This document shows, piece after piece, positions 880 to 23,500 of a stretch of 64,000 nt of DNA. The notes beneath the pieces were generated by a model. That model was not told the DNA's origin, searched no databases, and saw only the letters and a program-made list of their open reading frames with translations. Source of the DNA: Auanema rhodensis (taxonomy: Eukaryota > Animalia > Nematoda); the NCBI GenBank assembly GCA_964057225.1, contig OZ059896.1, forward strand, positions 18,228,001 through 18,292,000, given 5' to 3'. The translations under genes and the position numbers were made by a program. Within the stretch, counting starts at the first letter, position 1, and every line of letters starts with the position of its first letter.

Positions 880-2221
880 CTGGTGTTCCAGCTCAGTCTT
901 CATCATCTTCTCTATGTTTTTCCATTCAGAATTGGAAATAAGCGAAGCGTGGATCAAAAAAAGTAGCTTTTTTTAAGAATTCGTCATTTGCAATCGTTTT
1001 TTAGAAAAAGCTGTTAGTGGTAACGATGACATCACGAACAAAATTCTTGCAAACCGCGACGTTTGTGACTGAGTTGATCCTGAGCACTTTTAGTCAATTG
1101 TTATTACGAAAGAAAACAACGTTACTTTTCTAATTTTTTTTTATTAACTGGCAGCTTCCGTATGTGAACGCAACTGTTTTATTCGATTTCCAAGATATCA
1201 ATGTAGCTTCATGATAGAGCTTGAGTACGTCAACAACGAATTTGAGAAAATCGAGCTCAGACTGATTGAACAATGATTCACCTTCTTGAAATGCAATTCT
1301 ATCGTAAACTGAATGCTATAAAGTAACTCACCGTTATCTTGAAAAGACAGAAAACGTACCATTTTTAAAAAATGATTTATCATTTTATAAGTACTGCTCC
1401 ACCTTGCATGATTAAATTCAAAACGTGAGGAAAACAGTGAATACTAAACTATATTTCAATGAAAATCTTCCAAGAGTAACTAAGTTTTGTTTTCCTAGCA
1501 TTTCACAAGTTTTCTTGACATTAGTGGCACCATCAGTTATGCAAGCTATCATCTCGTTCATCAAGTTTGGATTGAGCGAATCATTCAGATTGTTCTTCAT
1601 CATTTGGGCCGAATGTGAGATAGATCAATAACATCCCATATGAAGTTCAACCGTTTCTGACTATCATAATTGATTGTGTGAGCTGTCACAGCCAACAAGG
1701 AAACAACTAGAATAAGAGTTACAACATATCAATGAAACATACTTTTCAAACGATAAAAAACTAACCTGTGTTCTCGGAACTCCATGCGTCAAATGTTATA
1801 GCAAACGTTTTTGCTTTCTCAAGAGTGAGTTTGTTAGTATTAGCAACTTCTGCAACAAATTGATTCATGAAAAAAAAAATAGTTACCTTTGGAAATCAGC
1901 TTCACGACTTTCATCGCTGTTGTTCTTGATGAAACGTAATACGCAGGATTCAGTTTTTTAAAGTAACTCTTTCAAAAAATAGTTATCCAGACAATTGACA
2001 GGTAAATAAGCAGAAGATATGAATTTGGCAAACAGCATATTGATTTCATTCTGGGTACACTTGGGTGTGCTTTCAAAAAAGTTAGAAAGACTCAGCTTAG
2101 CAACATGCTTCAAGAACTTGCAATCAGCCACATGCGTTTTCAGCATGGTTTTTTTTTCAGCACCCACAATCAGTGTACATCTTCGAACATTTTTTACAAT
2201 GGAAGAAGCCTTTCTCATCAC
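880..2221 (-). mobile_element. Degenerate hAT-superfamily transposase pseudogene
   Basis: Minus-strand fragments carry hAT motifs in the correct order: BED-like C/H residues (ORF 1958-2221), KLNPAYYVSSRTT after a frameshift, FAITFDAWSS (first catalytic Asp, ~1775-1806), ACITDGATNVKK (second Asp, ORF 1418-1603), ARWSSTYKM (~1381-1408) and ATFFDPRF (~945-968). Multiple stops and frameshifts. Confidence 0.8.
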
Positions 2222-2340
2222 TTTGAGATATATTTAAAATACGTGTCGTACTTATTTCCCATTATTAATTTAAATGAATAGAAGATGTAAGCCTAACAGG
2301 CAAACTACGTGATCGTTATAGGACTCATAAAAAAATTAGA

Positions 2341-3348
2341 TAATCGGTTGCAAGTATAATACATATATTACATAATTTAATCCGTTCGCCCCGCCCTTTA
2401 ATTTTTTGAATTTTCATACTAATTTTTCCGAACAAAAATTTTTAATATTTAGAAAATTTCTTAATAAATAATTTTGAATTTATTCATTCTTTTCAGAAAT
2501 AGTTTTGATTTAAATCAATTAATTTGGTCTTGTTCGTGATGGATGTTGTTCATATGCGTCACATTCTCTTGTATCATTTTAAAGAAGGAGTTTCTGCTAG
2601 AGAAGCCTTTCGAAAACTGAAATCGGTATATGGAGATTTGTCTCCAGTGTATAGTACGTGTAAGAAATGGTTTTCCCGTTTCAAAGCTGGAGAGACCGAC
2701 CTTCGGGATCGTCCAAGACCTGGCGCTCTGAAGAAATTCAGCGATGAAGACCCAAAACAGTTAAACAAATTGAAAAAAATAACAAAAAAACAGCGGGCAA
2801 AGTCATATTAAAAATTAAGAACAGATAGTATTGATGTAGTATTGAATTATAAAAGGTTTTCTTTTATTTCCTTTCCCTTTCTTAATTATTTGTTTCAGGA
2901 GTCTCTTATACCAATTTTTGTCTTTTTTTTTCACACAGCTGGCACTACCCAAATATTATTCTGGACATTTCGGCTTAACTTGGAATTCGATATCTTCTCG
3001 ATACGTTTTGGAAACTGCGCAGAATGAGTAAAGGTGAGCAGATCCATTGGCATCACCAAGGCCCCAACACGGTTTTCTCAGATGCGCCTCCGTTTTGTTG
3101 AGCTAAAATGTTTTGCACCACCTCTACTCTCTAGACTTTGAAATGTTCGTGAACATTTTTTTTTTGAGAAAAGTAAATTATTTTTCAGTAAAACAATACG
3201 AGATCATAAGAATGTTGAAAGAATTTCATAGGAATAAGAGGAAACTGAAATATTTAATAAATTAATTTGTATAAAATTTTTTTTCTTAATTTTCTTAGTA
3301 ATCGAGGGGGGGGCGGAACAAGTAAAGAACTTAATATTTGCATCATTA
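2341..3348 (+). mobile_element. Decayed, internally deleted Tc1/mariner element
   Basis: ORF 2539-2811 (MRHILLYHFKEGVSAREAFRKLKSVYG...TCKKWFSRFKAGETDLRDRPRPG) is a typical mariner N-terminal HTH. A degenerate HPPYSPDL motif (LHHLYSLDF) lies at ~3113-3139. Weak inverted ends: taatcggttgcaagtat (2341) versus atatttgcatcatta (3334-3348). Boundaries are approximate. Confidence 0.75.
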
Positions 3349-4583
3349 AGCGATAAATATCACATACTTCACATTTTTGTATGAAATACAATCACACCCG
3401 TCACTGGTTTTAACATTTTTCAAATCGCTGATCATGTTTTCAATATTGCTCAAATCTTTCGGAAAGACCAGCTTGTTTTAGTTCCTTCGATCACCGGTTG
3501 TATTGGATCAGCCAGAAAACTCACTCACACATACCCACACTCTCTGATACGATATAACACAGAATGGATTTGAAAGATTATAACTTAATCAGCTTTTATT
3601 ATGATTTAAAAAAAAAAAAGAAAAGAGTCAAAAATTGAATTTAAAATTGATAAATTGTTTTATGGAATATTGTTGGCAATATGTACAAAATGCAAAAAAT
3701 ATCTTGATGAGTATTAGTAATTTGGTCAAAGTCATTATATCTATTCGTTGATCCTCAACAAACATCCAATAACTACATTTACTAATATTATATAATTTAT
3801 TTAAAAATAAAAGTTATTATTTAATGAAATTCCAATGATTATTATGAAATATGACAAGTAAATATATATATAATGACCCTAAGTGGATGAAAATGACATT
3901 TAGTGGTTGAAAAGGATGGTAACGAAATAAAACTAATGAGCATTTCCTTAGTTATTAACAATGGGCAAACTTAATATTTTACAATCTTCACTCATTTCAT
4001 TGTTCAAAGATCTTCAATGCATTTCATTTAACTCTAATATTTCATCTTTTTTTTATTTCAACTGCGCAATTCGACTTCACCCTAATCTCACAACATAGCA
4101 TTATCTTATTCGACGTCGAAAAAGACGGATGAACGTCAGACGGCTCAAACAGTTAGCGTCGATACAAAACGTAAAAATCATCATCAATTCATACTTCCAT
4201 TCGATTGAGCGCATTGACAGTTGAACGTCAAATATCGTCGTCAAATAGAGTCTAATCTCAAGACAAAACGATATCAACTTGATAGGAATTCAAGAATCAT
4301 GATGTTCACTACTAATGCTATTGAAGCTTCATTACAATGTTCTTTGTAGATTGTACATGTTATACAACGTTATATTCTTTAATTATTTGTTTAATTTTTC
4401 AATTTTTCTTTTCAATTCTTTTAAAAATATTCTTATATTTGTAAAAGTCTTTGCTCTTTCTCAACATCAAACTCCATACATACATACATACACATATATT
4501 TCTTAGCATCATATTGAGGATATTTAACAACAGAGAATACTTGAATTTACTGCTCATTTTCAAGTTCTTATAAATTCTTCATA

Positions 4584-4589
4584 CTCTCT

Positions 4590-4663
<74 letters not shown>

Positions 4664-4686
4664 ACTCACTCACTCTCGCTCTCTCT
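4584..4686. repeat. (CT)n microsatellite grading into (CACT)n
   Basis: Directly visible. Confidence 0.95.
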
Positions 4687-7600
4687 CCCTTTCTATTTTT
4701 CTGTCCATTGTATGCCACCACACGTTAAGATGTTGAACGAAAAAAAAAAGAATTGAAATCCGAATCCCCTGTAACGCGCTATCGACAATGTCGTGCTCGT
4801 TGTCGTCGTTCCTTCTTGTCTATTCATAAAAATCTGTTAAACAAGTTTTGAGCTTCAAGTTGTTACCTGACACACCCCCAATAAAGTTTTTTTCACAGAA
4901 TAATAGTTTGCACGAGTAAAGGATACAAGAAAATGAAGTGATGGGTATTGATGAATGGAATCAAACTATACAGATCTTGACATGAAATGTAGCGAATTTT
5001 TATAAAAAATATGATCACAAGGTTGTCATTGTTGGGTTCCATGTGAATTTCATTTTGTATATATTCTTCTTATCTTTGGGACAAATACTTTATTTAAAAT
5101 CCAAAATGTGTTTTCTGACTTTTGTCCTTTTCTTCCTGAAGGATTCCCTCTACCCCCTACCCTTGCTTTCAAACTTTCTGTAATCTCCAGGGAAATTTCC
5201 GTTCAGAAATATTGAATAATGTTTAAATTATTTTCTCTTTGCTTGACAATTCTTTTTTTTTTGTAATTTTCAAAACAAAATTAATGAACTGCTTACATAC
5301 TTTTATACTTATGTTTTACCTCATATAATCAAATTGTTGGCAAAGTAGTTAAAGCCTATAAGAAAGGAAGAGAAAAGGAGATAGAGATAGACATAGAGAG
5401 AGAGAATCAGATAGAGAAATGTAGAGGAAGAGAAGAAATGAAAAACGAGAGAGAAAGAAAGAAAAATTCATAAATTACCATATAAAACTTTATGAGTTTT
5501 CAAGGAATCACATGATGATGTTGGTTATGACAATGGTCCAATCATATTTGACTCCAGTTCTCATAAAGTTCATATCAAGTTCAAAGCTCACGTGAAACAT
5601 CCACGTGTTGTTCTTTCTACTGCCATCTCTTTTCATAATTAACATCATCATCATCATAATCATTCATTAGAGCAAAGTGCCAACTACCATTGCTGTTATA
5701 ATTTGCTGACGCAATACTCGAGAAAAAATGTTATTTTCCGTCCCAATTTTTCATCCGAGTTCTACCACAACGCTTGTAGCAGCATTAGCTAGAAACTTGA
5801 AATAAGCTCAAAGTTGATCATACGTTTATGTCTGAATCTTTTGCCTTTTTTTCCATATTTTAGAACAAAGAACATTGAGAATTACGCAAATCACGTAAAC
5901 TCTTCTAGATCTAGTCGTTAGTATATCTTGAATAGTTTGTGTGCAGTTATGTGGAACAATTCTCATTATTCCTTTTTGGAATTATTTTCCTCATAAATTT
6001 CAAAGAAATCCGAGTTTTTGTGTTTTTTTTTCATAGAAGCAAGAAAAAAGAAGGAGAAAATTGAGGATAAAGATTAATAGAAATCAAAAGAAAAACTTTT
6101 TGTTTTGTTTTACATACATGTATATGGTTACATATATGTATATTCTTCATTAACTATGTATTTATTCATATTTTAAACTTTTTTTAAAATAAAAATCTTT
6201 TTAATAAATAAAAAAATAAAATTATTTAGTTATATGAATAATAATTATAATTTATATTATTATTATCAATAAAATTATAACAGTTTTACTCATCTTTTTG
6301 TAATTTTCAGCAATAAAATGTTTTTAATTTTCTTTTCTTTTCGCATTTTTTTACCGAAGAGCTATTATTTTTTTATTTTGAACTTGAGCTTCATTTCTTT
6401 TTCAACTTTGTACTCTTCTTTTATAAAAATATAATAACGAAAAACAAATATCAACATTTGTACTTGTTATTGAGATTGTAAGCTTGTTGATCTTCTTTTG
6501 AAACTATGCTCCAAACGAGACCCGTACGGATTATTCGGAACGAAAATAATGTATTTCATGTTATTCCAAACAAATTCTTTTATATATATAAGGTTAAGGA
6601 TTGAATAGTAATATATATTTTCTCACTATTTCATCCACATTCATCAAATTTTTTGGATAAAAATTAGTAAAAATAACGTGAAATCAATGGAATCCTCTAG
6701 ATCCCTCCTTCCCAATGTCCGTTGACTGCCCGATCTACTCGCCCCATTTCTACATAGAAATCGTATATTGTTGCTCTTTATTCAAGAAAGAACATTGGGT
6801 TTGTGAAATTCATATTTCTTCCTCACTTGTTACTTTTTCCTTTTTTTTTTCTTTTTTTCTGTTTTTACATTTTCAACTTTTTCTTGTAATTTTAAACAAA
6901 TATCTCACTTCAAGGCGACAGGCTGTTAAATATTCTGATAGAAGATCTGAAAGATCACCCAGAAAAACCACTTATGATCATCTCATGTCAGCTTAAAGCT
7001 TTAAATGAGTGACTGACAGGACCTTATGATAAACGCTACATGTATTATCCTGATTTTCGATGTGTAACTACGGGTCCATTCTTTAAGAGTTTTCTCTCTC
7101 TCTCTCTTTCTGTGTCTGTCTGTCTCTGTCTCCCTCTGTCTCTCTCTGTCTCTCTTTGTCCCATTTTTAACCTTTTCTGAAAATTTTTCAATTTCCCATT
7201 TTCATGGTTTTGCCGTCCCCTGAACTTTTATTCAAACCTACTTTATCTTCAAACTTTTTCTATTTCATCTTTGGCCTTCTCATTTATTTCCTCAACTTCT
7301 TCATTTTCTTTTCTACTTATTATGCATTTATAAGATGTTAGTATATGTATACATTGATGCTCAGGTTGTTCATAAACAAAGCTTTATATCAAGTTGTCTC
7401 ATTTCTATGCTACCTATCGTTTCTTCAGCTTTTCTTTCCTTTTCTTTCATTTTTCAATCATTCAAAATTCTTTCTTTTCTTTTTCTTTTTAAGAAATTGC
7501 CGGTTCAGCTAAGCAGATTTATAACGAAAAAAACGTTAAAAGAACCATGCTTCTTCCAGTCACCCCCAATTTCCCGTCTAAATTGCCGACTTCCTTTTTC

Positions 7601-8743
7601 CATTTTGCTTGTTGTGTGTCCAGCCATAGTTGGATGCAAGGAGGGGGGGAACCTCCAGATGCTAACCTTTTAATATGTTTGGTCGTTTAGTCTATAGCTT
7701 TCTGTTCTCAAGACTCTTCTTTGATTTTTTTATTCAATTATCACCTTGCCATTACTCCTTGTTTTTTCGATTCTTCCTTTTCAATACATATTCACACAAT
7801 TTCTCTTTTATCAATCCCTCTTTCTTCTGTCGTTTAGCTCCTCTCTCCCAACACCCTTCCCCGTTCAGTCATGGTTGCTTCCTAATCTTTTCTGCTTCGC
7901 TATACTACTAGTTTCCTTGTTTTTACCACATTCTCATCGTCCTACATAATCTTTTTGCTCAATAAACCTTCTCCAATGACTTGAATCATGAATACCAAAA
8001 ACGACAAACTGAAGCCACTGAGCCGAATGACAACGCGCCTATTCTTCCACGGACTCAAAAGAAGCTCATTATTCGGGTCTTCTTTCAGATACATCTATGA
8101 GCTGACTTCTGATTCTCACCCTAGCGGGGCTCATCACTTGTACTTTGTACGGCGATCGAGTGTGAAAAGAATAGAATAGCCAAGTAAAAGACGCAGAGAG
8201 TTAGGAAGATGAGGCACATTAGGAAAAGACGAGATAGCTAACAGGGTTATGGACAAGAAGGCGTCGACGACTCCAGAGGCCAATCCAGCTAATATCAGTC
8301 GTTTGTAAAATCTCTTTTTACAACTTTTGCTTCCTTCTCTCCTCCTCTCACCATCCAGCATTTCTCTCGCAGTCATTTTGAAAATCTTTTTAGTTCCTTT
8401 GAGCATCTATCCGTCTCTCCTCTCATCTTGGTTTCCGATCATTGTCATTGGAGTAATTCTTCAACTCTTCTTCAGTCATTGTCGGCTATTCTTTTATTAT
8501 TTTCTAATTACACACATACACATAGACTGACTCATTCACTCACTAACACTCAGTCATTCATTCACTCACTCACTTACACTCACTTTATTCTTCAGCTTCA
8601 TCATCCTTCTTCCTGCAAAACCTCTTCTCATTCGGGTTTTTTCTCTTCATTCATACGTCTTTCTTCACATTCATGCTTTCTGCTGTTGTTGTCTCTTCCA
8701 TCTATTGGTCAATTCGTCTTGTGTCCAGGGTGTTCATGGTGTC

Positions 8744-8782
8744 CACACACACACACACACAAACACACACACTCTCACACAC
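8744..8782. repeat. Interrupted (CA)n microsatellite
   Basis: Directly visible. Confidence 0.9.
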
Positions 8783-9321
8783 GATAGCTGCAAATTACAA
8801 AAGTTGATCCAACCTCTTCTTCTTATTCCACTTCGTCAGGCTCACTGGATAGAGCTACAAAGCAATTTTTTTCCAAATGTATTTCTAGTTCTACATAAGT
8901 TATTCTATATCATGTTTTACTTTTCTGTCTATCTTAGTATAATACTAACCGTATATATTCTCTTAAACTCATTCTGACCTGTTAATTGAAAACTGGAAGA
9001 GATTATAAATTTTTCTCCGATCTTATTAATCGAAAAGCGGAAGAGTTTTATCAATTTTTTGAACTTTAGAACCTCATCACACCTATCTCATACTTTCTGG
9101 CTTAGAAACGTGTCAGCAATGTACTTTAACTCAATTATCATCCATCATGCTTTTCCCGATTTACAACCACGTGAGCATTGCAGTCATTTCAATATGCTTT
9201 ATCTCTATTTTCTTTTTTTTAATTGGTCTTAACTGCTCTTCATCGTCAATGTCATCAGTTTTTTTCACTTAAATCACCTGAAATAATATTTTATAACTTT
9301 TTCTTTCAGTTTTCTTCACAG

Positions 9322-10865
9322 GTTCACAAACTCCATTGCACACTGGCCGCAAAAACTCCCGAGGCTGCTAGTACGTCGTCAACGACTGGCTACCGAACTG
9401 ACGACGAAGACGACCACATGTCCGAATTATGTGACGAATTTGATGATCCATCGGTATATTATTTTTTTTTTTGAATTACTAACGTATAATTGAAAACAAA
9501 GAGTTCGACTAAAAATTATTTATAGAAAAGCTTTCTTTTAAATTCTGTCTGTTTATTTGTTTTATGTGCATGTAACAACATATACTATTGCTGCTTTATC
9601 CTTCCCTCTCTCTCTCTAACTTCACCTATCTATCTATCTTGATGAATAACAGCAAATGTTTAGAGCCAATTTATGAAAATAATCGATTCCTTAGCTATTT
9701 TTGGGTAACAGATTTCATTTAACTTTCTCTTGCCGCCGTCATGTTTCAGGCGCATTTAGCTTTTACTGACCTCTTCAGACTCTACTGAACTTTGGCATGT
9801 TTGCTAGTCTTCCGGACGATCCATCAGTCTCATATCTACACTTCCGTTCTATTGTGTTATTTTCACCAACAGTGTGACATCAGTTCCTTTGATTCCAGCC
9901 TAACTTGAAACTTGTTTACTCATTCTATGTCCTACTGAACATCGTCTGTCCTTCTGAAGTCGTATGACTACCTTGACGTCCCAATCTCTCCTAGCGTTCG
10001 TTTGAGTTTCGTTGTTATTCTTGTCATTGAATACCAGGAAGCTTAAAAGTTGCTTAGCCAGCTTTGTTCTCCTTCTTCTACATCCATTTCAATTATATTC
10101 TTTCATCCTGGCTCTGTATTTTTTAGCTCTGGTCATCTGTTCAACTATAAAACTGATGAAATCGCCCGGAGGGCGCATTTCGTGCCAGCTTTGAGACAGC
10201 TGAAAAACTTCAAGAAAAAAACTTTTTTTTGGCCGTTCAGGCATTAAAATCGTACTTGATAGATCTGTTTAGCTATCCAAGTTCTGAAAAACAGGAGCAA
10301 GAAAGGCAAAAAAAAAGTGTGTGAAGCACACGATAGGAAATAAAGAACTTGAGGAGAATAGGGAGAAAGATGATGAAGCTGAAGAAACCGATGAGATACT
10401 GGATATTACGGATGAAGCAGCGTAGTACATAGTTAATGACGTCATCTAGCGTCATCGACTATGCTTTCTCTCTAAGGACATTCAAAACATGCAAGTTGCA
10501 TTATGTGAGCAGATTGACGAAAGACAAGCGAGAACAAATGGAGGAAGACGCTTCGCATCTAAGTTGGCAAGTGAGGACGATGAAAAGAGCAAGCAATACA
10601 AAGAGTGGACGAATGCGAAAAGTGAGAGAGACGAAGAAGAGCTTAAGGACCACCAATGAAGTTTTACCATTTTTTAGCATTTCGAAAAAGGTTCTCCATA
10701 TTTACGAATTTGCTTCATCGAACCAATTGCTACACAACTAGATTCACAATTATTTTTCTTTTATCTTGCTTTACTTTCACCTGAAGAATAAAATACTTTG
10801 CTACTCACTTCTTCTCTTTCCCTTTCTCTCTCTCTTTCTCTCCCTCTCTATCTAGTCTACCTCTT

Positions 10866-10928
<63 letters not shown>

Positions 10929-11466
10929 TCTCCCTTTTCTTCTAAGCAAAACAGTTCTGTTTTTCCTTGGTTTATCGACCATAATGTATCCTTCCTACAC
11001 ACAAATAATACACAACAACACAAAACATGTTAGAAGTAGAACTCATGTCAGCATGTTCATTGCAATTCTTGTCCTTTGCCGTGTTTCTAAAAACAGATTC
11101 TCTTCTGATGCGGTTAAGGCTGGTAGGTTGTGTCGTGGATCCAACTTTCCTTAAACTGCATTTTCAATGATATGATTACAACCGTCTATCTTCGCAAAGT
11201 TTGTTTTCACTTTGTTCATCTGATACACCAATGTGGTTCTTCTATCCATATCCCTGATATTCCTCATCTAACTGGCTGTTTCATGAACAGCTTATGCTTC
11301 AATTCATCTGACTATACTTCGTCTTCTTCTTGTTCAGCAGCAACTACTACTCACTGTCACATTTTTCACCTATCTCTTGTATTCAAATTCAATTCTTATT
11401 TTTTCATTCAAATTTCTTAAAATCTAAAAAGAAAAGGAGAAAAGAGAAAAAGAAAGAGAGAGAGAG

Positions 11467-11506
<40 letters not shown>

Positions 11507-12368
11507 AGGCACTAATTTATCAAATATGTGTATATTCAAGTGTATTTTGACTTGATGAATTACACGATTCATTCTTTTAAACATCAGATTAAAATAAGCT
11601 TATCATTGCAATGATACACCTGCAACTTGAACCAACTTTTGATTATAATCCTGAAGCAAAAGACTGGAATTGATATCATGTTTTAAAGATAAAACTTACT
11701 AAAGTTGAGGAAAGGATATAATGAGCATCAGGTTCTTTTGAAAAACTAATAGAAATAGTGAGTGATAGTAAGAGATAAAGAAAGAGAAATAGAAAAAGAT
11801 AAAGAGGAAAAGATAGCGTTTTGCACGTTCAAACTTGAAATAAGATTATGGATGTAGTACCATGAGGTTACAGCTATCAGTTGGTAGGCGATATGTATGA
11901 AAACGAAAAAAAGATGAAAAGAAAGACGATGTCAGTTGTTTCGCTCATACTCTTTTTCATTGGCTTCATCACAAATCATTATTCATATATCTCTTGAAAA
12001 TGGCTTTAAAATCTGAACTTAGTGAGATGGGATGCAGTGAGAGAAAAAAGAAGAAGAAATCAGAAATAAAAAGACAAATAGGAAAATGAAATGAGGGGTA
12101 GAACACGGGGGGGGGGAATAATTACGAAATTTTAGACTTTTATCCTTTAAGTTATACTTTATGATGACAACTCAAGAAGATTTTGAAAGTGATAAGCTTT
12201 TTTACCTTGACAGATAACTTTCAACAAACGCAGTTGCCTGTTCATGAAAGTGATAAAAGATATTATTATAAATTCATAGAGTTAAGAGAATGAAAGAAAA
12301 AAACTAAAGATAAAGTAAGTTCAGTGATTTGGCTGAGAGGATTAGATTGAGAGGCAATGCTGTGACTA

Positions 12369-12421
<53 letters not shown>

Positions 12422-14595
12422 GTTACGAAAAGAGCAACAGAAGGTTTGTGTCATGTCTTCATTGACTCTCACTTCTTCACGTGTCTTGTTACTTCCAACA
12501 CACTTTGTCGATAGATCGCATGTTTTCGGTTGTGGGTGGAAGCTACCAGTTAGAATGAGCGACGAAAAATGCTACTATTACTCTGATTCTGATTGCCCAA
12601 CCTGCCAGCTTTAACTTAATATTCTATTCGTTTATGGTATTCGAACAAGGCGAACAGTTGAAACTTTAAGTTTCACCGTATTCTAGTTATAATATTCCGA
12701 ATATACTTTCTCTCTTTCCCTCTCAGCGTATCGAAGTCTTTATTTTGTCTTTTGCAACGATTTCTCGTCTTCAAACTCCCGGAAAAGGAAAAAAATTATT
12801 TTTTTCTGGTGTGCTCAGCTACTTCATAAGTTCTTTGTTGTATATTTTAAATGACTATTCTTCGTATTATTCTTTCATTTCTTCATATTCATTTTCAAAA
12901 AATTATGGAAAATGCAATTGTCTTTCTTATTCAGAATATACACTTCCTCACGGACGTCAGATTCATTAATCTTCAGACAACACCAATAGAGCTTTGAAAG
13001 ATGTTTCCCAAATTGGGATTGGCCACGAAATCAGCCCTCATAGTAGGTTTTCTTCGGCCTCTCCTGTCACATCCTACTTCACTTTCTACTTTTATACCAA
13101 CTAGCAACTATCCTCCTTTCAATCCCATCTTATCTCTGCTATTACTCAGCTGTACTTAAATTGCTTTTGAATTTTAGTAAAATAGACATAAAGAAGAGTA
13201 CAAATTACTAATTCTATCATAGATTTCATAACACTTACCACTCAAACTGTGTTTAATACATTTTTATTCAAAACTTTCCGTCGCATGATTCAAGGTAGGC
13301 GGAGCATGAAGTCTGTCCTCCTCAATAACTAATCTCAGCGTTTTGACCTCCTCTTTACTTCTTCATGTATTTCACTTGTCCAAACTTCTAATCTTCTGCT
13401 TTTTGCTCTCCGTCTCTCAAATGACTATATATGTATCTAGTAGTACCTACTTATAGTTAACTAGCCGTACTAGTCTCTCAATCATCAGCAGGACCATCAT
13501 TTCACTAGTTTATCTACTTCTCCTTTCTTCTTCATCTTCATCTCCTTCTACTTCTTGATTGTCGTCTACTTCTCACCGTTGAATCATCACTGCCGGCAAT
13601 ATTTCCAAATTTTTCCATTTTTATGCTGAAGCTTTAAACGCTTATCTTTCTACCAAATCTGACAATTTTAAGGCTCATAAATTCTATAGGCTATATTCTT
13701 TGAATTTCCTTTTTTTTCTTTTCAATCGTTTTGCGTCAAATTGTCTTTGAAGCATTTTTTTAAAGCATTTTTGCATAATTTTCGTATAAAATATCAGAGA
13801 ATGATCCATTTTCCAAAATTTTAAAGTTGAATAGAACTCCATTTCTAATGCATGCGATCCTAGCAAACTCTTTAGACCACCATCAGCTTGTCATCAAACA
13901 GTCGCTTCAACAAGAGTCTTTAAAGTTTTTTCTTCAAAATTTGAACAAAAAAAAACTGAGTGTTTTCATTTGAAATTCAAAGTTCTAATTTCATTTTGTT
14001 CTATGCTAACCTAAATACATGTTCATATACATATGTGCAATCATTATAACTATAAAGCTTGTTTGTTTGTAAATAATCCTATAATATTTCCAAATAACAA
14101 TAAAAATTATATTTTTTCTATATAAATAAATCTTTTTATCAACTTTTATTTTCAGAAAATGCAAATAAAACAAGGATATTTTCGACGAAAGTGGCGAAAA
14201 GCCAAGACCTCCCTGCTCAGTATGTGCATGACCAAATATAGGAAATGCTTAACGAAAATGAAAAAGTGCATACGAACTGACACTGAAGTTGACCATGATC
14301 GCAGAAAAAGTTCAGCTAAATTGCATCCCTTACCAGGTATGTGAAATGTTTTTAGAAAAAAAAAACATTTTTTTCGTCTTGGAAATCTTTTAGTAATGTT
14401 TCTTTCGTCTAATTTTATATTCATGCTTCTCTTAAAACTACATTAAACTTGTGCAATATTCTTACAAAGAAAAGAAAAACCTTTATTCTACAAGTTGCAT
14501 TGTTTCAAAAACTTAGCATGACAACAATTAATTTAAAAATGCTTATCATCATAGTATATGCGAACTTTCTTAGCGTTCTCTTCATTCATTCCTCT

Positions 14596-14674
<79 letters not shown>

Positions 14675-17292
14675 CAATTTCAATCTATTCGATTGTTAGC
14701 TAATTTGAGTTCCAATGTTTGGATGATGACAACTTTCCTTACGAAAAGTAAATTGTTCAAGATTTTTCACTTTGATGTCAAAGCATAACTTGATATGTTG
14801 AGGAACTTTTTTCTATTTTTCTAACTTCCATAGATCAATGACACCTTCTACACCAAAAAGTTTTATTGGCTTTTACGCGGTAAAGGCCTTAATCTCATAT
14901 TTCATGTGAAACGTAGCATTGACAACAAATGCTCATCACATTGACGTCAGCAAACCCAGCCAAGCTCAACTATAAGGTTGGGGGTTAGGAGGTGAACTAT
15001 CACAAGCACCATCCTTGTTCTATCTCCTCCCACCTGTAGTGTGAGGTAGTGATCTTATGCGCTATTTTTAAAACTTTTTCTCTCAATTTCTGAAAGAAAA
15101 AGAACAATGATTTCTATCTCTCAAACTTGTTCAATAGCGTTTGGTCCTGTATAGCGTCTTAGTTAAGAGATCAAGTTATGAAAGAGAAACAAAAACGAAT
15201 AGAAAGGAGGGATAATTGATAATTTGAAAAAATAAAATAGATTTCGATTATAAAACTTTAATCATTTCTTTTTGATTAATATTATGCTTAAAAGAATTTT
15301 AAATATTTGAATTACTTAGATGAAAGCAAGTACTTTGAATATACCAAAGATATTTTACTCAAAAATTTCTATTAGTTCATTTTAAACTGTAAAATCAATT
15401 CGCATGTGTTATAGATCGACCAATTCGTCGAGTTGCTTCAAAGTTAAAACGAAGACCAACTGATGAACTCAACAAACTCCGTCGGAAGGGAGAAGATTGG
15501 ACTGCTAACGACCTTTTCCGTTTTCAATACAGTGTGCCTGAGGCTGGAACGCCAGAAGAACGTCGTCAGCTCTGCTATGAATGGCTAGATAGATTACACG
15601 ATATATCAAAGAAATACTGCTATCTTGCTTGGTAGGATTCACGCCCCCAAAACAAATTACCGAATCGAATTGGAATTGTTTAGGTACGAAGCAGCTATAT
15701 ATGCTTGTTACTATCGTTTGGCACCCATATTAACGGACCCGGAAGAAAAGAAGTCTATTTGGAGAGATGCTCGTCAAGAATATGCCGAAATCTTTCTCAT
15801 GGGTCGCCGCATCTGGAGAAGGCCAATTCATCCTTCACGTCTTCGAGTATTTTACGACATGGCCATGCTTTGTGTTAGATTCGGTGAAGTAGAGGTAACA
15901 CATTTTTTGTTTCAACAAAGAAATTCGAATAAAATCTATTAAATAGCCTATGAACAACTGTCTTTACTAAATAGTTGGAATAGCTATTGTTGAAGTTAAG
16001 AATGACTGATCTAACTCAAATATATTACTTTTTTTTAAATTTTCAATATCAAGTAGATTAATGATTCTTAAAGCTTTTCCAAGAAATAAAATTTAAGGCA
16101 GTTGCTTGATCAAAACTCTTTTGTACTCAATAGATTTGAGATTTTAACTATTTAATCTAATGAAATACTTCCAGGGAGATAAGACTATCCCAATGTTCCG
16201 CAATCTTCTGGATGATGCAACAAACTTTGACTTCAAGGTGCTTAATGAGGTCGAATTCGCAAAGTCTATTGACAAGGTAAGATAAAGGTTAACCATCTTA
16301 AACTGAGATCATTTACAAATTAATCTTTTATTTTGTTTCAATATCCCATTTTTTTAATTATCCAAAACCCTTTTGTCTTTCTCTTTTCCTAAAATCTCTT
16401 TCTGATTCTCTCCATCTCTTTATCCGTCTCTCTCAATCTAACTATTTATCTCCCTAGCTTGTCTTTCTTGTCAGTTGGTCCGTCTTCAGCTGACATTACA
16501 ATAAATAAAATGTTCTTTACTGAAAACACTATTAGAAATCCATTTTTCATTCGTGAAAATGAATCATCTGATTTCTGCAAAATGGTTTTGATTGCAAAAG
16601 TTCGTTAATAACAATAGAGAACAGAAGACAGTGAGGTGAAGGTGATGAGGGAATTCTGAGGAAGTAGTAGTAACCTGAAAGTACAGAAATAAAATCCTAT
16701 TCATTCATTATGACTTTTGAAAATAACAATCTATGATCTTGATAATTAAAACATTTTTCAGGTCACAAGACTAGAAAATTTTGTGATTGATGAGTTCTAT
16801 CCACGTCGACGTTCTTCTGGATCTGTTAGAACAAGCTTCCGTTCTCGTCGGAATACTGACCGAAGTCCATCCAGACGTAGTCAAACAGATGATGATGTCT
16901 TTGTGGATGCCAAGTCGTCTATGTCATGCGCTGTCCCACCTCTAAAAGATGAATCCGATACTGATTTGGATTTGATAGATGAAAAGCTCCGCTGTATTCA
17001 TCTTTACAATGATGAGTTCTCAAAACAAGATTCATGTGACAAATACAGAAGCAGTCCTGACGTATCGTTATGGTCTGAATTAGATTCTATGAAATCAGCA
17101 TCTGAAGAGCCTTTAGTCGAAAAGCCAGTACATCGACAACGTAAAGGAGCTTCTATGTCACCTACAACAGAGCATAGACTCCTTAATATTCCCAAAATAG
17201 TTATAAATGCTCCAAGCCGAACAAACAGCATGCGACTCATATCTCCTCGTCTCAGTGTGAGATTCGAAGATGATGAGCCATTAATAAACTAA
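9322..17292 (+). CDS. Divergent 14-3-3-like protein with a basic N-terminal region and a Ser/Arg-rich disordered C-terminal tail
   Basis: Phase-compatible exons: 9322-9453, 14156-14336, 15415-15631, 15684-15894, 16175-16276, 16762-17292. The start is uncertain (Met at 9418, Met at 14159, or an upstream exon such as 7335-7364). CYYRLAP..DARQEYAEIF..PIHPSRL..DKT..LDDA..LNE..LENF parallels 14-3-3 DYYRYLAE..SQQAYQEAF..PTHPIRL..DKA..FDDA..LNE..RDNL. Confidence 0.75.
10871..10924. repeat. (CT)n microsatellite, intronic
   Basis: Directly visible. Confidence 0.95.
11455..11503. repeat. (GA)n microsatellite, intronic
   Basis: Directly visible. Confidence 0.95.
12369..12413. repeat. (CT)n microsatellite, intronic
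   Basis: Directly visible. Confidence 0.95.
14599..14671. repeat. (CT)n microsatellite, intronic
   Basis: Directly visible. Confidence 0.95.
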
Positions 17293-17649
17293 AATTTTAT
17301 CTTAATTCTTTCATTTTGTACATACCGTTTTCTTCAGTCTCATCAAAACTTTCGTATGGGTCCACGAATTTTCCTCAAGTTATCAATATTTTATTTTTTT
17401 TATTTTTTTTGAGAACTATGGTCACAACTGCCTGAATGAACATTTCGAGAAACAGATGAAGCAATAATCAATGCTATTCCTCGTCATATGTGCCTTATTC
17501 GTGGCCAATATCACTTTGTTTGTGCAATATTTGTTATATAGAGATATTATGAAATTCATTTCTGAGAAATATGACATTATAATAAATTTTTTATATTACA
17601 AATTTCTTGTTTTTGGATTTTATTAAAGCATACAGTACAGAACAATTTA

Positions 17650-19887
17650 TTATTTTAAGAATTTACGAACTTCAGCATTATAATTTACCAGCATTGTTTT
17701 CATCTCTGGAGATCTTGCTGAATCAATTAAATTCTTGATCATGTCACTAAACCATCCATATCCCAGAGATATCACCTTGGCGTGTGTGTATATACGATTT
17801 AAATCCTGAGCAAAATACATTTTCAGGAAAAAATGAAAAGAATTATACCTCGTGAACGTCAGGCACACTGTTCTTTTTGATCAATTTTGACAACTTAGTA
17901 GCAGTATCTCTAGATAAATATTCCCCATTTATCCAATTCGCGTGAGTTATTAAGCGAGATTTCGTAGCTGTACTCAATGGTTTTACCTGAATTTTAACCA
18001 TTCCTTCAACAATTCATCATTTAAATCTAACCTCAGGAGCACTAATAAAGTTCAAAAGATGTGACCAAGTTTCAGGATGAATCGAATCTGAAAGCAGCCC
18101 TAGAACTAGGTGACAATCTGATAACGGAATTTCTTCATTTGCTGAAAATATAAACTCTTATACGACCTAATATACGACTTCGCAAACCTAGAATACCATT
18201 TCCAACAGCAATGAGGAAGCAATATCTGGGAGGTTTCGATGTTCTCCGTATTTGACAAAACGCAACAGAACTCGTTTTTATTAATCCTTGCATGAGTAAT
18301 TCCATTAAAGATTTTGTATAAATCTGCATCTAAAACGAAAATCAACTACAAGAATATGAAGGCGAACAATCACACCTTTTTGGAGAATTGAGTCTCGTCA
18401 CCTGCACAGTCATTGTCAGTATAAGCTGAAAATGCAATATTAGAAGGAGTAATAAAGAAAATCTTAATTACCATTTTGCACAAGAAATAGCTCATCTGTT
18501 CCAACACCATTTATATATTTCTCACCCATATTTGCAGCAAGGAATCCAACTGTTTCAATCGTTTGTATATGAAATGGATTGGAATTTTGGGCCAATTTGC
18601 CTGATTTCTTCCAACGGTTCAAGAGCCGCCTCTTCTTATAAGTCCAGCTTGTAATTTTCCGCGGAACGCTTAGATTCTCCTTTTTAGGTTGCTGGGTAGG
18701 CTTTGGTAGAGTTTCCTCCTCAGATATTTCCTTTGAAGTTAATCTTGAAAGCTAGAAATCGGTAAAAATTGATTATCTAGAAAGAAGTTATGATGAACCT
18801 TAATTCTAATAGGAGCTTTAGAACCAAACTTCAAGGCTACACCTTTCATTGGAACACCTTTTCTATCTAGTATGAGATCAGTAAAGTAATACACGTAAGG
18901 AACTAAATGTTCGGGTTTTTTGCTAAAACGCTGATATTATGAATAAAACACTGAATCAAAGAGCATACCAAAGTGAGAAAGTACTGTTCATTGGTGAAGC
19001 TTCTACAATATTACGTATTTCTGCAAGCTTGCCTTTATTCTTCGACAAAACTAAGAAATGACATCGTACTCTACTCAAAATATTTTTCAAAGCAAGCTTA
19101 TTCTGGAACAATATATAATTAGAGCAAAACTTATGCTTTAGGTTTACCGGTTCATCTAAATTTATACCATTATCTATAATAAATACAATCCTATCATTTT
19201 TCTTTTCAGTTTGTCTCACAATTAAATCGAGAACACACTCAAAATTACAAGATGGAATATTGAGAATTTTTTGCTTCGCCAAACAAGTCAACCTAGAATC
19301 AGTTGGTTAAAGTTCTTAGAAAAATTGCACACCTTGTACTGAGCATTCTATAACTTGCAAAACTACCACCAAAAGAGCCTGATACTGGTCGTTCAGCTCT
19401 ATCAGTTAGTGTGGTCTAAACACAGGAAATATTTTTTTTTATTATTTATTTATCACCATTGCAAAGGCCATAGATTTTTCTTTACTTTTCGCATGTAATG
19501 TTGAGAAAAGATCGCAAAGAAATATGCATCCTAGGGAAAGTTTGGATAATGCTACAGCATTACTTGCAATATCTTAAAAAATGTTAGTTTCAAAAATTTT
19601 TCTCAATTTTCAAATACCGTGACGAGCTTCTGAAAACGGTGATCCTACAAATCTCCAAGCATTTTCACTTACTGTATCCAAGTAATCATGCCAATCAGAA
19701 GGACTATAAGTCATTTATATTTAAATACAGTAAAGCTTATGACTAACCATTGCCCCATAGAAGTTGCCGATGAAATAGCGAATAATATTCTTTCTTCACT
19801 ACCATTCGGAGGAGATGATTCTTTTATCTTTTCATCTCTAGGAGCTTCTACGATTGTTTCTTTTATTGCAGAAGTCTTTTTCCTCAT
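17650..19887 (-). CDS. vWA plus Ku-like beta-barrel protein; candidate divergent Integrator subunit 14 (INTS14/VWA9)
   Basis: About 12 exons joined in phase through short GT-AG introns, from ATG 19887 (MRKKTSAIK) to TAA at 17650. Motifs: RILFAISSATSMG, DRIVFIIDNG, IETVGFL, LMELLMQGLIKTSSVAFCQI, HANWINGEYLSRD, HEDLNRIYTHAKVISLGY. The gene model is well supported; the family call is an inference. Confidence 0.6.
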
Positions 19888-20536
19888 ATCTTTAATGAAT
19901 AAAATCAATCAATAAAACTAAAAACACTTGAGTAAATAGATAAGTTTTTTCCATTAATCAGGAGAAACTATACAGTATTTTCATTTGTATAGAAATAAGC
20001 GTAAGGTTATAACATATATTAAAACTTGAGTTTTTAAACGAATAAAGATTTTTATCCACACGCCCGGTCGAGATATTACGTGAGGATGATATTGCGCAGG
20101 AGGTTATATACATTTGAAACTATAAGACTTTCTGTTTTTTGGATCCATGAGAACTTAAGAGGAAATCGTCTAGCTTGGTTCAATTACTTAAAAGGCAAAA
20201 TACAAAAAAACATCATAACCAGTTATGTTCTTGTTTCTTTTTAAAATAAGAGAAATATATGTGACGCAGTTGACAGACGTAATTTACCAGATTAGTTTTG
20301 TGCAGATAAAGAAGAGATATAAGTAAATATTTATTTGCAATCTCAAGAACAAGTGAATGTAATTCCTGGGAATCTCGAAAGTAAGTAGAATATGGCCATA
20401 AAATTACAAGCATACACCAAATCTACAGTACCGATATTATTAACAATTATACTATTCCACAACATTATTGTACATACATATTTCATTTATAAAATAATAA
20501 ATAGCAATTGCAATAGAATATGAAAACTTATAACAA

Positions 20537-23500
20537 TTAATAGTATTTAGAACATTCTTTCATATAAGCCTCTACATTTTGACATGGTAACTGGGGATAA
20601 TAGTTTTCAATATATGCACATCTTTCTGAAATGAGAAAATATTTAGAAAAAATATTAGGATCACCCACCTAAAGCAAATTCCATTACGTCTGACATTGAG
20701 AATTGTTTTGCAAAATTAGCTATGTTTAAACAATGTAATCTACCTGGCTTCTCAATCTAAAGTTCAATAATGAATAAATTACTTAGAGACTATTTTAATA
20801 TTCACTTTATTTGGGGTTATAGTTTTGCGTTTGATTGGATGTACTCGGCTGGATTTATATGTTTGGGATTCAACTTGTTTTTCTATATCAGACAAGAATG
20901 TTTCTTCATCCATATCCTCTACAGTATTTTCGTCATCTTCGTCTTCAACCTGACCTAGTCGTTCCATTTCTTGTTCTATTTGTTTGTTCATGGGTTCACT
21001 AGGTTCAGAATGTCCTTCCTAAGAGTTTCCAAGCATATTTAAAAACTTAAAACTTATCAAACCGAAGACTTTTTCCTATCAACCAAAAAAGTTTTGATTG
21101 AATGAATTCGTCGTAGAACTGGTTCGTTATGAGATGAAGCTCTTTCCTTCTTTTCTAATTCGGCTTCTTCCTACAATGAATTGATGTGATTAATTATGTA
21201 ATAGATCCAAGTTGATTACCGAATCAGTTGGGATTGAGTCCATATGATCGAGAAATTCGTCTGTTGGAACTCTAGCTTTTGGAGGATTCTATAATTACAT
21301 TGATTTAACTGTTGATAAGGATGTTTTTTACCTTCAAGATCGCATCGCTTTGGCGTGGGCGAGGAACATCACTGGACAAATGATCCTAAGAAGAGATGTT
21401 TATTTTTATTTTTATTATTAATATGTAAAAATGAAAAAGTTGACTTACAAATTCACGTACAGCTTCGCTATCCAAATCGTTCTCAGTTGTTACAACTGGT
21501 TTAATTTTCTTAATTTTCTTTTTCAAAGAGTATTTATCTTTCTGAAATTGCAGAATGATTATTATATAACAAGCTCAAGGTTCGATGAATCAGATCAGTC
21601 AAAAACTTTCAAAAAATTACAATTTTCTAAAGATTTTGATTTTATGATACTTACTTCAAATTCTTCTCTTGTTTGAAATGCAAGTCTCTCATCAACCATA
21701 GGGACAGATTCGTGACCCTCATCTGGTTCTGAAGCTCTAAGAAACTCTTTATGTACAGAAGTAATACTCTGAATAATATTTAATTCTAATGGAATATATA
21801 TTTCTGTTTTACCTTTAAACTAACAGTCTTCTTCATATCGTTTGCACTGTCTATTGGCACTGGAACAGCTTGAGATTCATAAACAAGGGTGCTTCTTTCA
21901 TCCTGAACAAGTTTAGTGAATGGACTTTTTTATTTAAAGCTTATAAACCTCAGGTCCGTTAATGACATCCACTTGTCGTTCTGTATCTGCAGAAACTTTT
22001 CTAATGCTATTCGAAACTGTGTTAGGTGATTTAATTGGTTGAACAGGAGGAGCAGGAACAGTTGTGGTAGCAAGAGGAATATAGTTTGGAATCTTTAGTG
22101 CAGATGGATAATTAGTGTTCATAGCTCTCTGTAATGCGTCCTGGAAATGAATATAAGCTTCAAAGAAATTTAAAAATCCGAAAAACCTGAGTAAGTGTCA
22201 TAATTCCATTCATAGCATTATGATTGTAAAATGGGTTAATCATAGGTGGAAATGTATTCGCTTCATATCTAGCAGAATTTGCAAGAATTTGTGGCTTCTG
22301 AAATTAATATCCGACATGAATAGTGTGATGTTATACAAGTATTTATAAAAACAAACTAATTTGCATAAAATTTAACGGAGACGTGGAAAAATCAATATTT
22401 GATTCATTTCTTCAAAATATCAAAATGAAAACGCAATGTTTTCTTTTAATTTTAATACCATTTATTCAAGCCTATGCAATAAATGAAAATAATATATCTA
22501 CAACAGAATTCAAAATAGAAAGTAGTACAGTTTCAATGGAAATTGGCAGAAGTGAAAACGATGACACTAACATCGTTAGTACTAATTCAAGGTTAGAAAG
22601 CTTTTACTCTCATTCATTTTTATTATACTTATAGTGAAATACGGATAAAAAGAAAACAAAATAGTATAAAAATATTTTATAATGAGCAAAATTCCATGAT
22701 ACAAAAAATTTTAAAATATTTTTTGGATAATCTAAAGGGTGCTCATATAGCTACATATCCACTATTTAATTTAACGAGTGATATAAACATGTATTCAAAC
22801 AAAATTGAAGATGTCGATATATTATGCGAAAAATATGTTTGTTTACTTATTTATAATATTTTATTTTAATATATTATATTCGTAAATCTTCAGGCAGATA
22901 AATTAGTAGTTGATCAAAAACCTCAAGATTTTACTATTGTACTAATGACATTAAGTAATATAGAACGGGTAATTTCAAATTAAAACAAAAGAATTATAAT
23001 AAATGTTTTTAAATTTTATAGGCATCTGATATGTGTAATATAGCTGGAAACATATTATTTCTCAGATATTTACCATTTTATCATTTTGTTCTTCTAGCTA
23101 ATCTGCAAATTGATGGAGGAAGAACAATTTTTCCCGTTTATAGTACTATTTAATTCAAAAAATTAGATTAATATTGTAAATTAATAGATCCATACTTTAC
23201 TTTTCGAATTCAATATGTTGCAACAAGGTTAACTGATGTCATCAATTTGATGTCATATGGTACGGAAGCCGCCGTAGAGTATAATCTAAAGATGAAAAAA
23301 AAAGTTCGAGTACATCGTCATACTCATGATACGAACGTATAGACTATATTATCTATTTATATTTTTTATGTTTTTGTTTCAGTTAAATACAAATTCTCAA
23401 AGAAATAATATTTTAATATGGTCATCAACAATATTATTCTTTGCTGTTCTTGTAATCTGTATTTTAAATCGGGAAAGAATTATGATTAAACGAAAGAAAG

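Follow-up and report, generated by a model that had tools for sequence, protein, structure and literature searches.

The locus at positions 17650–19887 of the window (the whole 64,000-nucleotide stretch of Auanema rhodensis DNA analysed here) carries a minus-strand gene, running from 19887 to 17650, with 13 exons and 12 introns. Each intron is of the GT..AG type and 40–47 nt long, the borders being placed by GT..AG and reading frame. The coding sequence (17650..19887, minus strand) is complete, from an ATG at 19887 to a TAA stop at 17652-17650, and its 1704 nt encode a protein of 567 aa, with a mass of 63.9 kDa and a pI of 9.4. The initial annotation had described a gene hidden in a dozen small exons, with outer coordinates identical to the ATG and stop of the refined model; the chain of small exons stands, while their number is corrected from 12 to 13. 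The peptides it had quoted are all found in frame on the minus strand, in exons 1, 5, 8, 10, 11, and 12 and at the exon 12/13 junction.

Positions are counted below on the joined 567-aa translation; the searches and models took single exons, fragments, or the orthologous protein P0001 described below. All exons lie on the minus strand. Exon 1 (19748..19887, aa 1–47) encodes a 31-aa N-terminal extension and then the first vWA-like strand, carries RILFAISSATSM, and is 60% identical to its counterpart in Auanema sp. JU1783. Exons 2 (19618..19703, aa 47–76), 6 (18969..19102, aa 191–235), and 9 (18376..18425, aa 370–386) are supported by the gene model and transcript contigs, as is exon 3 (19457..19572, aa 76–114), which the DNA of Auanema sp. 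JU1783 keeps and its annotation omits. Exon 4 (19333..19415, aa 115–142), with TTLTDRAERPVSGSFGG, is among the best-conserved exons (81% vs. Auanema sp. JU1783). The segment DRIVFIIDNG in exon 5 (19148..19292, aa 142–190) resembles the vWA strand beta-4, with its Asp kept. For exon 7 (18799..18922, aa 235–276), the acceptor is at 18922, not 18930. Exon 8 (18472..18751, aa 277–370) starts with a poorly conserved acidic-then-basic insert and continues into the first predicted barrel strands with IETVGFL, and further predicted barrel strands, SSVAFCQIRR and PRYCFLIAV, follow in exon 10 (18188..18329, aa 387–434), which carries LMELLMQGLIKTSSVAFCQI. Exon 11 (18032..18141, aa 434–470; 75% identity) contains a conserved linker with HLVLGLL. 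Exon 12 (17849..17986, aa 471–516), which has the highest conservation of all exons (82%) and carries ANWINGEYLSRD, encodes the remainder of the linker and the first helix of the C-terminal domain. Finally, HEDLNRIYTHAKVISLGY spans the junction with exon 13 (17650..17805, aa 517–567 plus the stop), which opens with DLNR and encodes the C-terminal helical domain, its predicted helices having pLDDT of 80–93.

In one study, four runs contain transcript-like contigs of about 1730–1750 nt, which reproduce 12 of the 12 junctions with zero mismatches and skip exactly the modelled introns (CT..AC on the plus strand). The source runs were taken as RNA by guess, and the intron-less, SL1-capped contigs match the expected form of mRNA. 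In two runs the contigs have CCAAGTTTG at their 5' ends. This sequence corresponds to the 3' terminus of the SL1 leader of nematodes and is joined at 19891, in keeping with the assignment of the gene to a nematode; a loose contig end on the plus strand, CAAACTTGG, is the same CCAAGTTTG of SL1. The trans-splice acceptor AG (19890..19891, minus strand) lies 2 nt before the ATG, and the mature 5' UTR consists of SL1 plus 2 nt. At the other end, the 3' UTR is short (17616..17649, minus strand): the contigs end at 17616–17639, with one AATAAA hexamer at 17651-17646 that overlaps the stop codon and another at 17624-17619. As these contigs are intron-less and SL1-capped, the gene is expressed. It is a real, complete, trans-spliced, and intact gene, far beyond what chance would produce. 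Since the mRNA carries SL1, not SL2, there is no sign here of a downstream place in an operon.

Another transcript contig, about 1500–1700 nt long, ends at 17564–17598, some 20–50 nt away from the 3' terminus of the mRNA described above. It probably belongs to the plus-strand neighbor (last ORF at 16783-17292), and the two genes would therefore be convergent, with 3' ends nearly abutting. Upstream, the minus-strand gene at 20532-22288 is 55–73% identical to its counterpart in Auanema sp. JU1783 and is another fast-evolving neighbor. A (CT)n-type microsatellite at about 14600–14700 of the window translates into a long SLSLSL... repeat in two ORFs of the plus strand. A scan with Rfam over positions 1–64000 yielded 0 families at the gathering score.

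Conservation in Auanema sp. JU1783

The sole true relative found is P0001 from Auanema sp. JU1783, which is 523 aa long and deposited as an "unnamed protein product". An exhaustive HMMER search with exon 8 alone as the query, covering 1.84 billion representatives, produced this one relative and two repeat-protein artifacts. Three word-index searches with P0001 (whole, residues 385–500, and residues 75–215) retrieved P0001 itself and no further relative, and a scan of metagenome contigs found no relative either. The databases searched thus yielded no sequence that would bridge the protein to canonical INTS14 or to C. elegans. P0001 is collinear with every exon of the gene except exon 3, with exon identities of 57–82%. 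Over 486 aligned codons, the two genes share 68% amino-acid identity, with pN of 0.21 and a saturated pS of 0.79; these comparisons rest on part-length alignments, as the full-length MAFFT alignments came out misaligned. The value of pN, well below that of pS, indicates purifying selection. Auanema sp. JU1783 also keeps the frame and the positions of all 12 introns.

The counterpart of exon 3 is present in the DNA of that species (contig CALQYR020007199.1 of assembly GCA_943334845.2, positions 10317–10430) and is 68% identical. A conserved exon of 38 codons at this place means that the gene model behind P0001 omitted it. The public model of P0001 is about 40 aa short, within the vWA-like domain. 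Synteny between the two species extends over more than 25 kb in inverted orientation (window 6100–31400 vs. 1500–20300 of the same contig). Within this block, the exons of a neighboring gene (window ~9346–17292), whose product in Auanema sp. JU1783 is a DUF7758 protein of 450 aa, are 80–97% identical. Conservation of this neighbor is far higher than that of the gene at 17650–19887, which therefore evolves faster.

Similarity searches, structural models, and motifs

Direct comparison with known families gave uniformly negative results. In hmmscan runs with E up to 10, no match to VWA_2 (PF13519), IntS14_b-barrel (PF19435), or IntS14_C (PF20504) was obtained with ten exons, P0001, and ten sub-ranges, and none to the Ku core (PF02735), Ku_N, or Ku_C with P0001 and the ten sub-ranges. 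Neither Mat89Bb (PF10221) nor M1AP_N (PF28287) was matched in Pfam by P0001 and the sub-ranges, and the Pfam Treslin model had no match. The Pfam output consisted of sub-threshold noise (BsuBI_PstI_RE, OST-HTH, WDR47_COR). A restriction-endonuclease or LOTUS domain reading was rejected, as the respective scores of 12–15 bits are far under the cut-offs. Searches of the PDB, which includes INTS14, by phmmer with exon 8 and P0001 and by a two-species profile revealed no INTS14, VWA, or Ku protein; the matches (L32, haemoglobin, an antifreeze protein) were at chance level.

Language-model features of P0001 point to a single superfamily. Three INTS14 clusters were on top, with scores of 0.95 (192/256 shared features), 0.94, and 0.94, and the next family sets among the matches listed were M1AP (0.94), asunder/INTS13 (0.93), Ku (0.91), and one unnamed cluster. 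When residues 255–523 were used alone, with the vWA part excluded, the cluster of the INTS14 barrel and C-terminus was again first (0.91, 192/256 features), followed by INTS13 (0.87) and Ku (0.86, range 0.83–0.86). According to the calibration of the method, a score of 0.95 is reached by about 1 in 100 shuffled proteins, and at least 170 shared features usually mean the same family. According to the heuristic of the tool, the exact family may be wrong, as only 5 of the 10 best matches fall into the top family with the whole protein and 1 of 10 with the C-terminal half. These features lend strong support to the superfamily and moderate support to INTS14. In the model of the Atlas itself, residues 274–413 align to Ku barrels with TM of 0.32–0.36 by query. 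The matches listed in the Atlas search by structure include Ku, M1AP, and a Treslin cluster, the latter with TM of 0.44 by query over residues 265–523 and 0.15 when normalized by target. INTS14 is absent among the matches listed in this structure search, and Treslin is absent among the feature matches listed.

Two AlphaFold models were built, one of P0001 alone and one of its residues 196–523 with fragments of the 17650–19887 protein. Both are poor (pLDDT 44.5 and 41.7; 22–38 in the barrel region) because an alignment was lacking, and confidence is limited to a portion of the vWA-like domain and to the four helices at the end. In Foldseek searches against 350,542 chains, the full model retrieved INTS14 at rank 1 (8pk5_B, E = 1.6e-3), closely followed by 6sn1_B, 9eoc_B, and Ku chains, and the C-terminal model retrieved Ku80 at rank 1, INTS14 at ranks 2–4, and INTS13 (6sn1_A) at rank 36. 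All of these matches have E > 0.001 and TM < 0.2 and are without significance, and Ku chains are interleaved with those of INTS14. The vWA fold match is tied with flavodoxin-like dehydroquinases in a model that is only partly confident, and the C-terminal fold match does not rise above the helical-bundle background. The initial annotation had taken a best structural match to Ku70/80 as an argument against INTS14; on these weak models the result is divided, the full model favoring INTS14 and the C-terminal one Ku80.

The paper on the human proteins gives the residues D8, S10, L11, and S12 (PMC7347597), and the MIDAS formed by D8, S10, and S12 binds INTS10 (PMC7347597). Here, the strand beta-1 with a degenerate MIDAS (ILFAISSATSM, aa 34–44; 19756..19788, minus strand) reads S39-x-A41-x-S43 vs. 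human D8-x-S10-x-S12, so the replacement of the MIDAS Asp by Ser, suspected from the start, is real; Auanema sp. JU1783 likewise has Ser (ISSVTSM, i.e., S-x-V-x-S). Thus, the INTS14 MIDAS pocket is lacking in both the 17650–19887 protein and P0001. Within the arm module of human Integrator, INTS14 and E633 of INTS10 share the metal of the MIDAS (bioRxiv 2024.01.30.577955), and INTS-10 of C. elegans is a protein of only 38.7 kDa (PMC6390993). For these two reasons, loss of the MIDAS–INTS10 contact in nematodes seems plausible, by analogy with the human complex.

Two other motifs have candidate human counterparts. In human INTS14, the segment LG(PISD) at 369–374 of the linker threads through a loop of INTS13 (PMC7347597), whose LxPF loop is unconserved in nematodes according to Sabath et al. 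(PMC7347597). The candidate counterpart is LGLLSD (aa 447–452; 18086..18103, minus strand), which is FGLLST in Auanema sp. JU1783. It sits in the best-conserved stretch of the protein, exons 11–12 (75–82% vs. 68% overall), where little secondary structure is predicted. The DLNR that opens exon 13 may correspond to human ELNR at 436–439. The human motif YKELNRLRKAALAFGF, quoted in the initial annotation, is indeed matched by the human peptides TQTFYKELNR (430–439) and KAALAFGFLDLLK (442–454). From the Leu of the LG motif to that of the LNR motif, the distance is 71 residues in this protein vs. 68 in human INTS14. A Lys/Arg-rich insert with KKRR (aa 277–330; 18590..18751, minus strand) corresponds approximately to the 47 residues by which the distance between MIDAS and LG exceeds that in human, and it is a possible nuclear localization signal.

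Identity and possible role of the protein

From N- to C-terminus, the protein is predicted to comprise a vWA-like alpha/beta domain, then a basic insert, a beta-rich center, a conserved linker, and a four-helix domain, and this layout would be that of the Ku70/Ku80/INTS13/INTS14/M1AP superfamily. In human INTS14, the order is a vWA domain, a barrel, a long linker that is highly conserved and devoid of secondary structure, and a helical domain (PMC7347597). We consider it very probable that the protein belongs to the structural superfamily of Ku, INTS13, and INTS14. As for the exact family, the initial annotation had proposed a very divergent INTS14. The features, the Foldseek rank (non-significant), and the LGLLSD/DLNR spacing agree with this proposal, while all sequence and profile searches, the MIDAS, the FGLLST of Auanema sp. 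JU1783, and the LxPF loop of INTS13, unconserved in nematodes, speak against it; on balance, a divergent, fast-evolving nematode INTS14 has a slightly better than even chance of being correct.

An alternative explanation, which we regard as rather unlikely, is that the protein is a superfamily member but not an INTS14 orthologue, i.e., a lineage-specific INTS13/M1AP-, Ku-, or Treslin/SLD-3-like paralogue with another partner or role (DNA repair, meiosis, replication initiation). By features, M1AP (0.94), asunder/INTS13 (0.93), and Ku (0.91) are indeed close to INTS14 (0.95), but INTS14 headed three rankings that are partly related (features of the whole protein, features of the C-terminal half, and Foldseek with the full model) and outranked INTS13 every time. 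Length and architecture, too, fit INTS14 better: 567 vs. 518 aa and no long C-terminal tail, as opposed to INTS13 (706 aa), Ku80, and Treslin. A paralogue would agree with the lost MIDAS, with Ku80 at Foldseek rank 1 for the C-terminal model, with the Atlas structure matches listed, which include Ku, M1AP, and the Treslin cluster and no INTS14, and with the doubt about the exact family raised by the heuristic of the feature tool; it is harder to reconcile with counterparts of LGxxSD and ELNR at near-human spacing (71 vs. 68). Moreover, nematodes already possess recognizable INTS-13, CKU-70, and CKU-80, which argues against this alternative.

Still less probable, in our opinion, is a clade-restricted protein outside the Ku superfamily, in which a generic Rossmann/vWA-like N-terminus is combined with a helical C-terminus and the INTS14 and Ku signals are artifacts of weak methods. 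This would explain why no search by sequence, profile, or structure gave a significant match, why one relative only was retrieved (by exhaustive HMMER with exon 8 and by word searches with P0001), and why the central region is unmodeled, and shuffled proteins do reach 0.95 about once in 100. It does not explain why the feature matches listed (ten family sets from 30 matches, and five matches for the C-terminal half) all belong to one superfamily, bar one unnamed cluster, nor the strong enrichment of Ku-like chains atop two Foldseek lists drawn from 350,542 chains, and the domain order agrees with the superfamily as well. Finally, the probability that the locus is non-functional, be it a chance chain of ORFs, a pseudogene, or an assembly artifact, is negligible, given a spliced SL1-capped transcript in four runs, an intact frame of 567 codons, 12 intron positions and a frame kept in Auanema sp. 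JU1783, and pN well below pS. The pseudogene and chance-ORF readings were therefore rejected on the transcripts, the conserved introns and frame, and the pN/pS relation.

The INTS14 reading has to be seen against the published inventories, which, as the initial annotation had stated for C. elegans, lack this subunit in nematodes: Gomez-Orte et al. found all Integrator subunits in C. elegans except INTS-14 (PMC6390993), and according to Sabath et al. nematodes have no INTS14 (PMC7347597). No report of a nematode INTS14 was found in the literature searched. At the same time, C. elegans keeps INTS-13 (R02D3.4; PMC6390993), and human INTS13 is presumed unable to exist on its own, or to fold, in the absence of INTS14 (PMC7347597). 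A cryptic nematode INTS14, if true, would resolve this inconsistency of a retained INTS-13 and an INTS14 reported absent. By analogy with the human complex, the candidate INTS14 would fold with INTS-13 into a pseudo-symmetric heterodimer of the Integrator arm module. In such a heterodimer, the linker with LGLLSD would lie on INTS-13 or thread through it, and the metal-dependent MIDAS contact to INTS10 would be lost, with S-x-A-x-S in place of D-x-S-x-S. In its broadest form, the proposal is that rhabditid nematodes kept INTS14, which diverged past every sequence profile and gave up the MIDAS–INTS10 metal bridge while still interlocking with INTS-13; we hold this scenario to be possible, at somewhat less than an even chance.

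In nematodes, Integrator acts in the processing of snRNAs, spliced-leader RNAs, and the precursors of piRNAs. While the gene structure, its expression, the SL1 leader, the syntenic orthologue, the selective constraint, and the degenerate MIDAS are established by the data, the barrel fold, INTS14 orthology, pairing with INTS-13, nuclear localization, and a role in snRNA and SL RNA 3' processing are inferred. If they are true, nematode Integrator would be completed, the published list of 13 subunits would be incomplete, and a C. elegans orthologue would be expected among uncharacterized proteins. The protein would also be part of a natural INTS13–INTS14 pair functioning without the MIDAS–INTS10 contact, and the candidate would represent a clear failure of homology detection for a fast-evolving subunit. 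The INTS14 candidate is testable in culturable Auanema-type worms.

Among known systems, Treslin/TICRR (Sld3), which has an N-terminal vWA domain and a Ku-like M domain, accounts for one Atlas structure match (TM 0.44 by query), but the nematode protein does not have the long tail with CDK sites. Ku70/Ku80 and bacterial Ku share the layout of vWA domain, barrel, and helical arm, whereas their feature scores (0.91 and 0.83–0.86) are under those of INTS14, and eukaryotic Ku is longer than the nematode protein. The same superfamily architecture is present in INTS13/Asunder and its paralogue M1AP, which score 0.93–0.94 for the whole protein (INTS13 0.87 for the C-terminal half), below INTS14; in contrast to them, the nematode protein is without the long tail that carries the cleavage-module-binding motif. 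The closest resemblance is to human INTS14/VWA9 (PDB 6SN1 chain B; PF13519 + PF19435 + PF20504), which at 518 aa is of similar size. The differences are a 31-aa N-terminal extension and a basic insert of some 50 aa that precedes the barrel in the nematode protein, a C-terminus beyond the LNR motif that is about 30 aa shorter, the S-x-A-x-S form of the MIDAS, FGLLST in Auanema sp. JU1783, and no Pfam, phmmer, or profile match. On the other hand, both proteins have the same predicted order of a vWA-like domain, a beta-rich center, a structure-poor conserved linker, and C-terminal helices, and LGLLSD and DLNR of the nematode protein are paralleled by LGPISD and ELNR in the human one.
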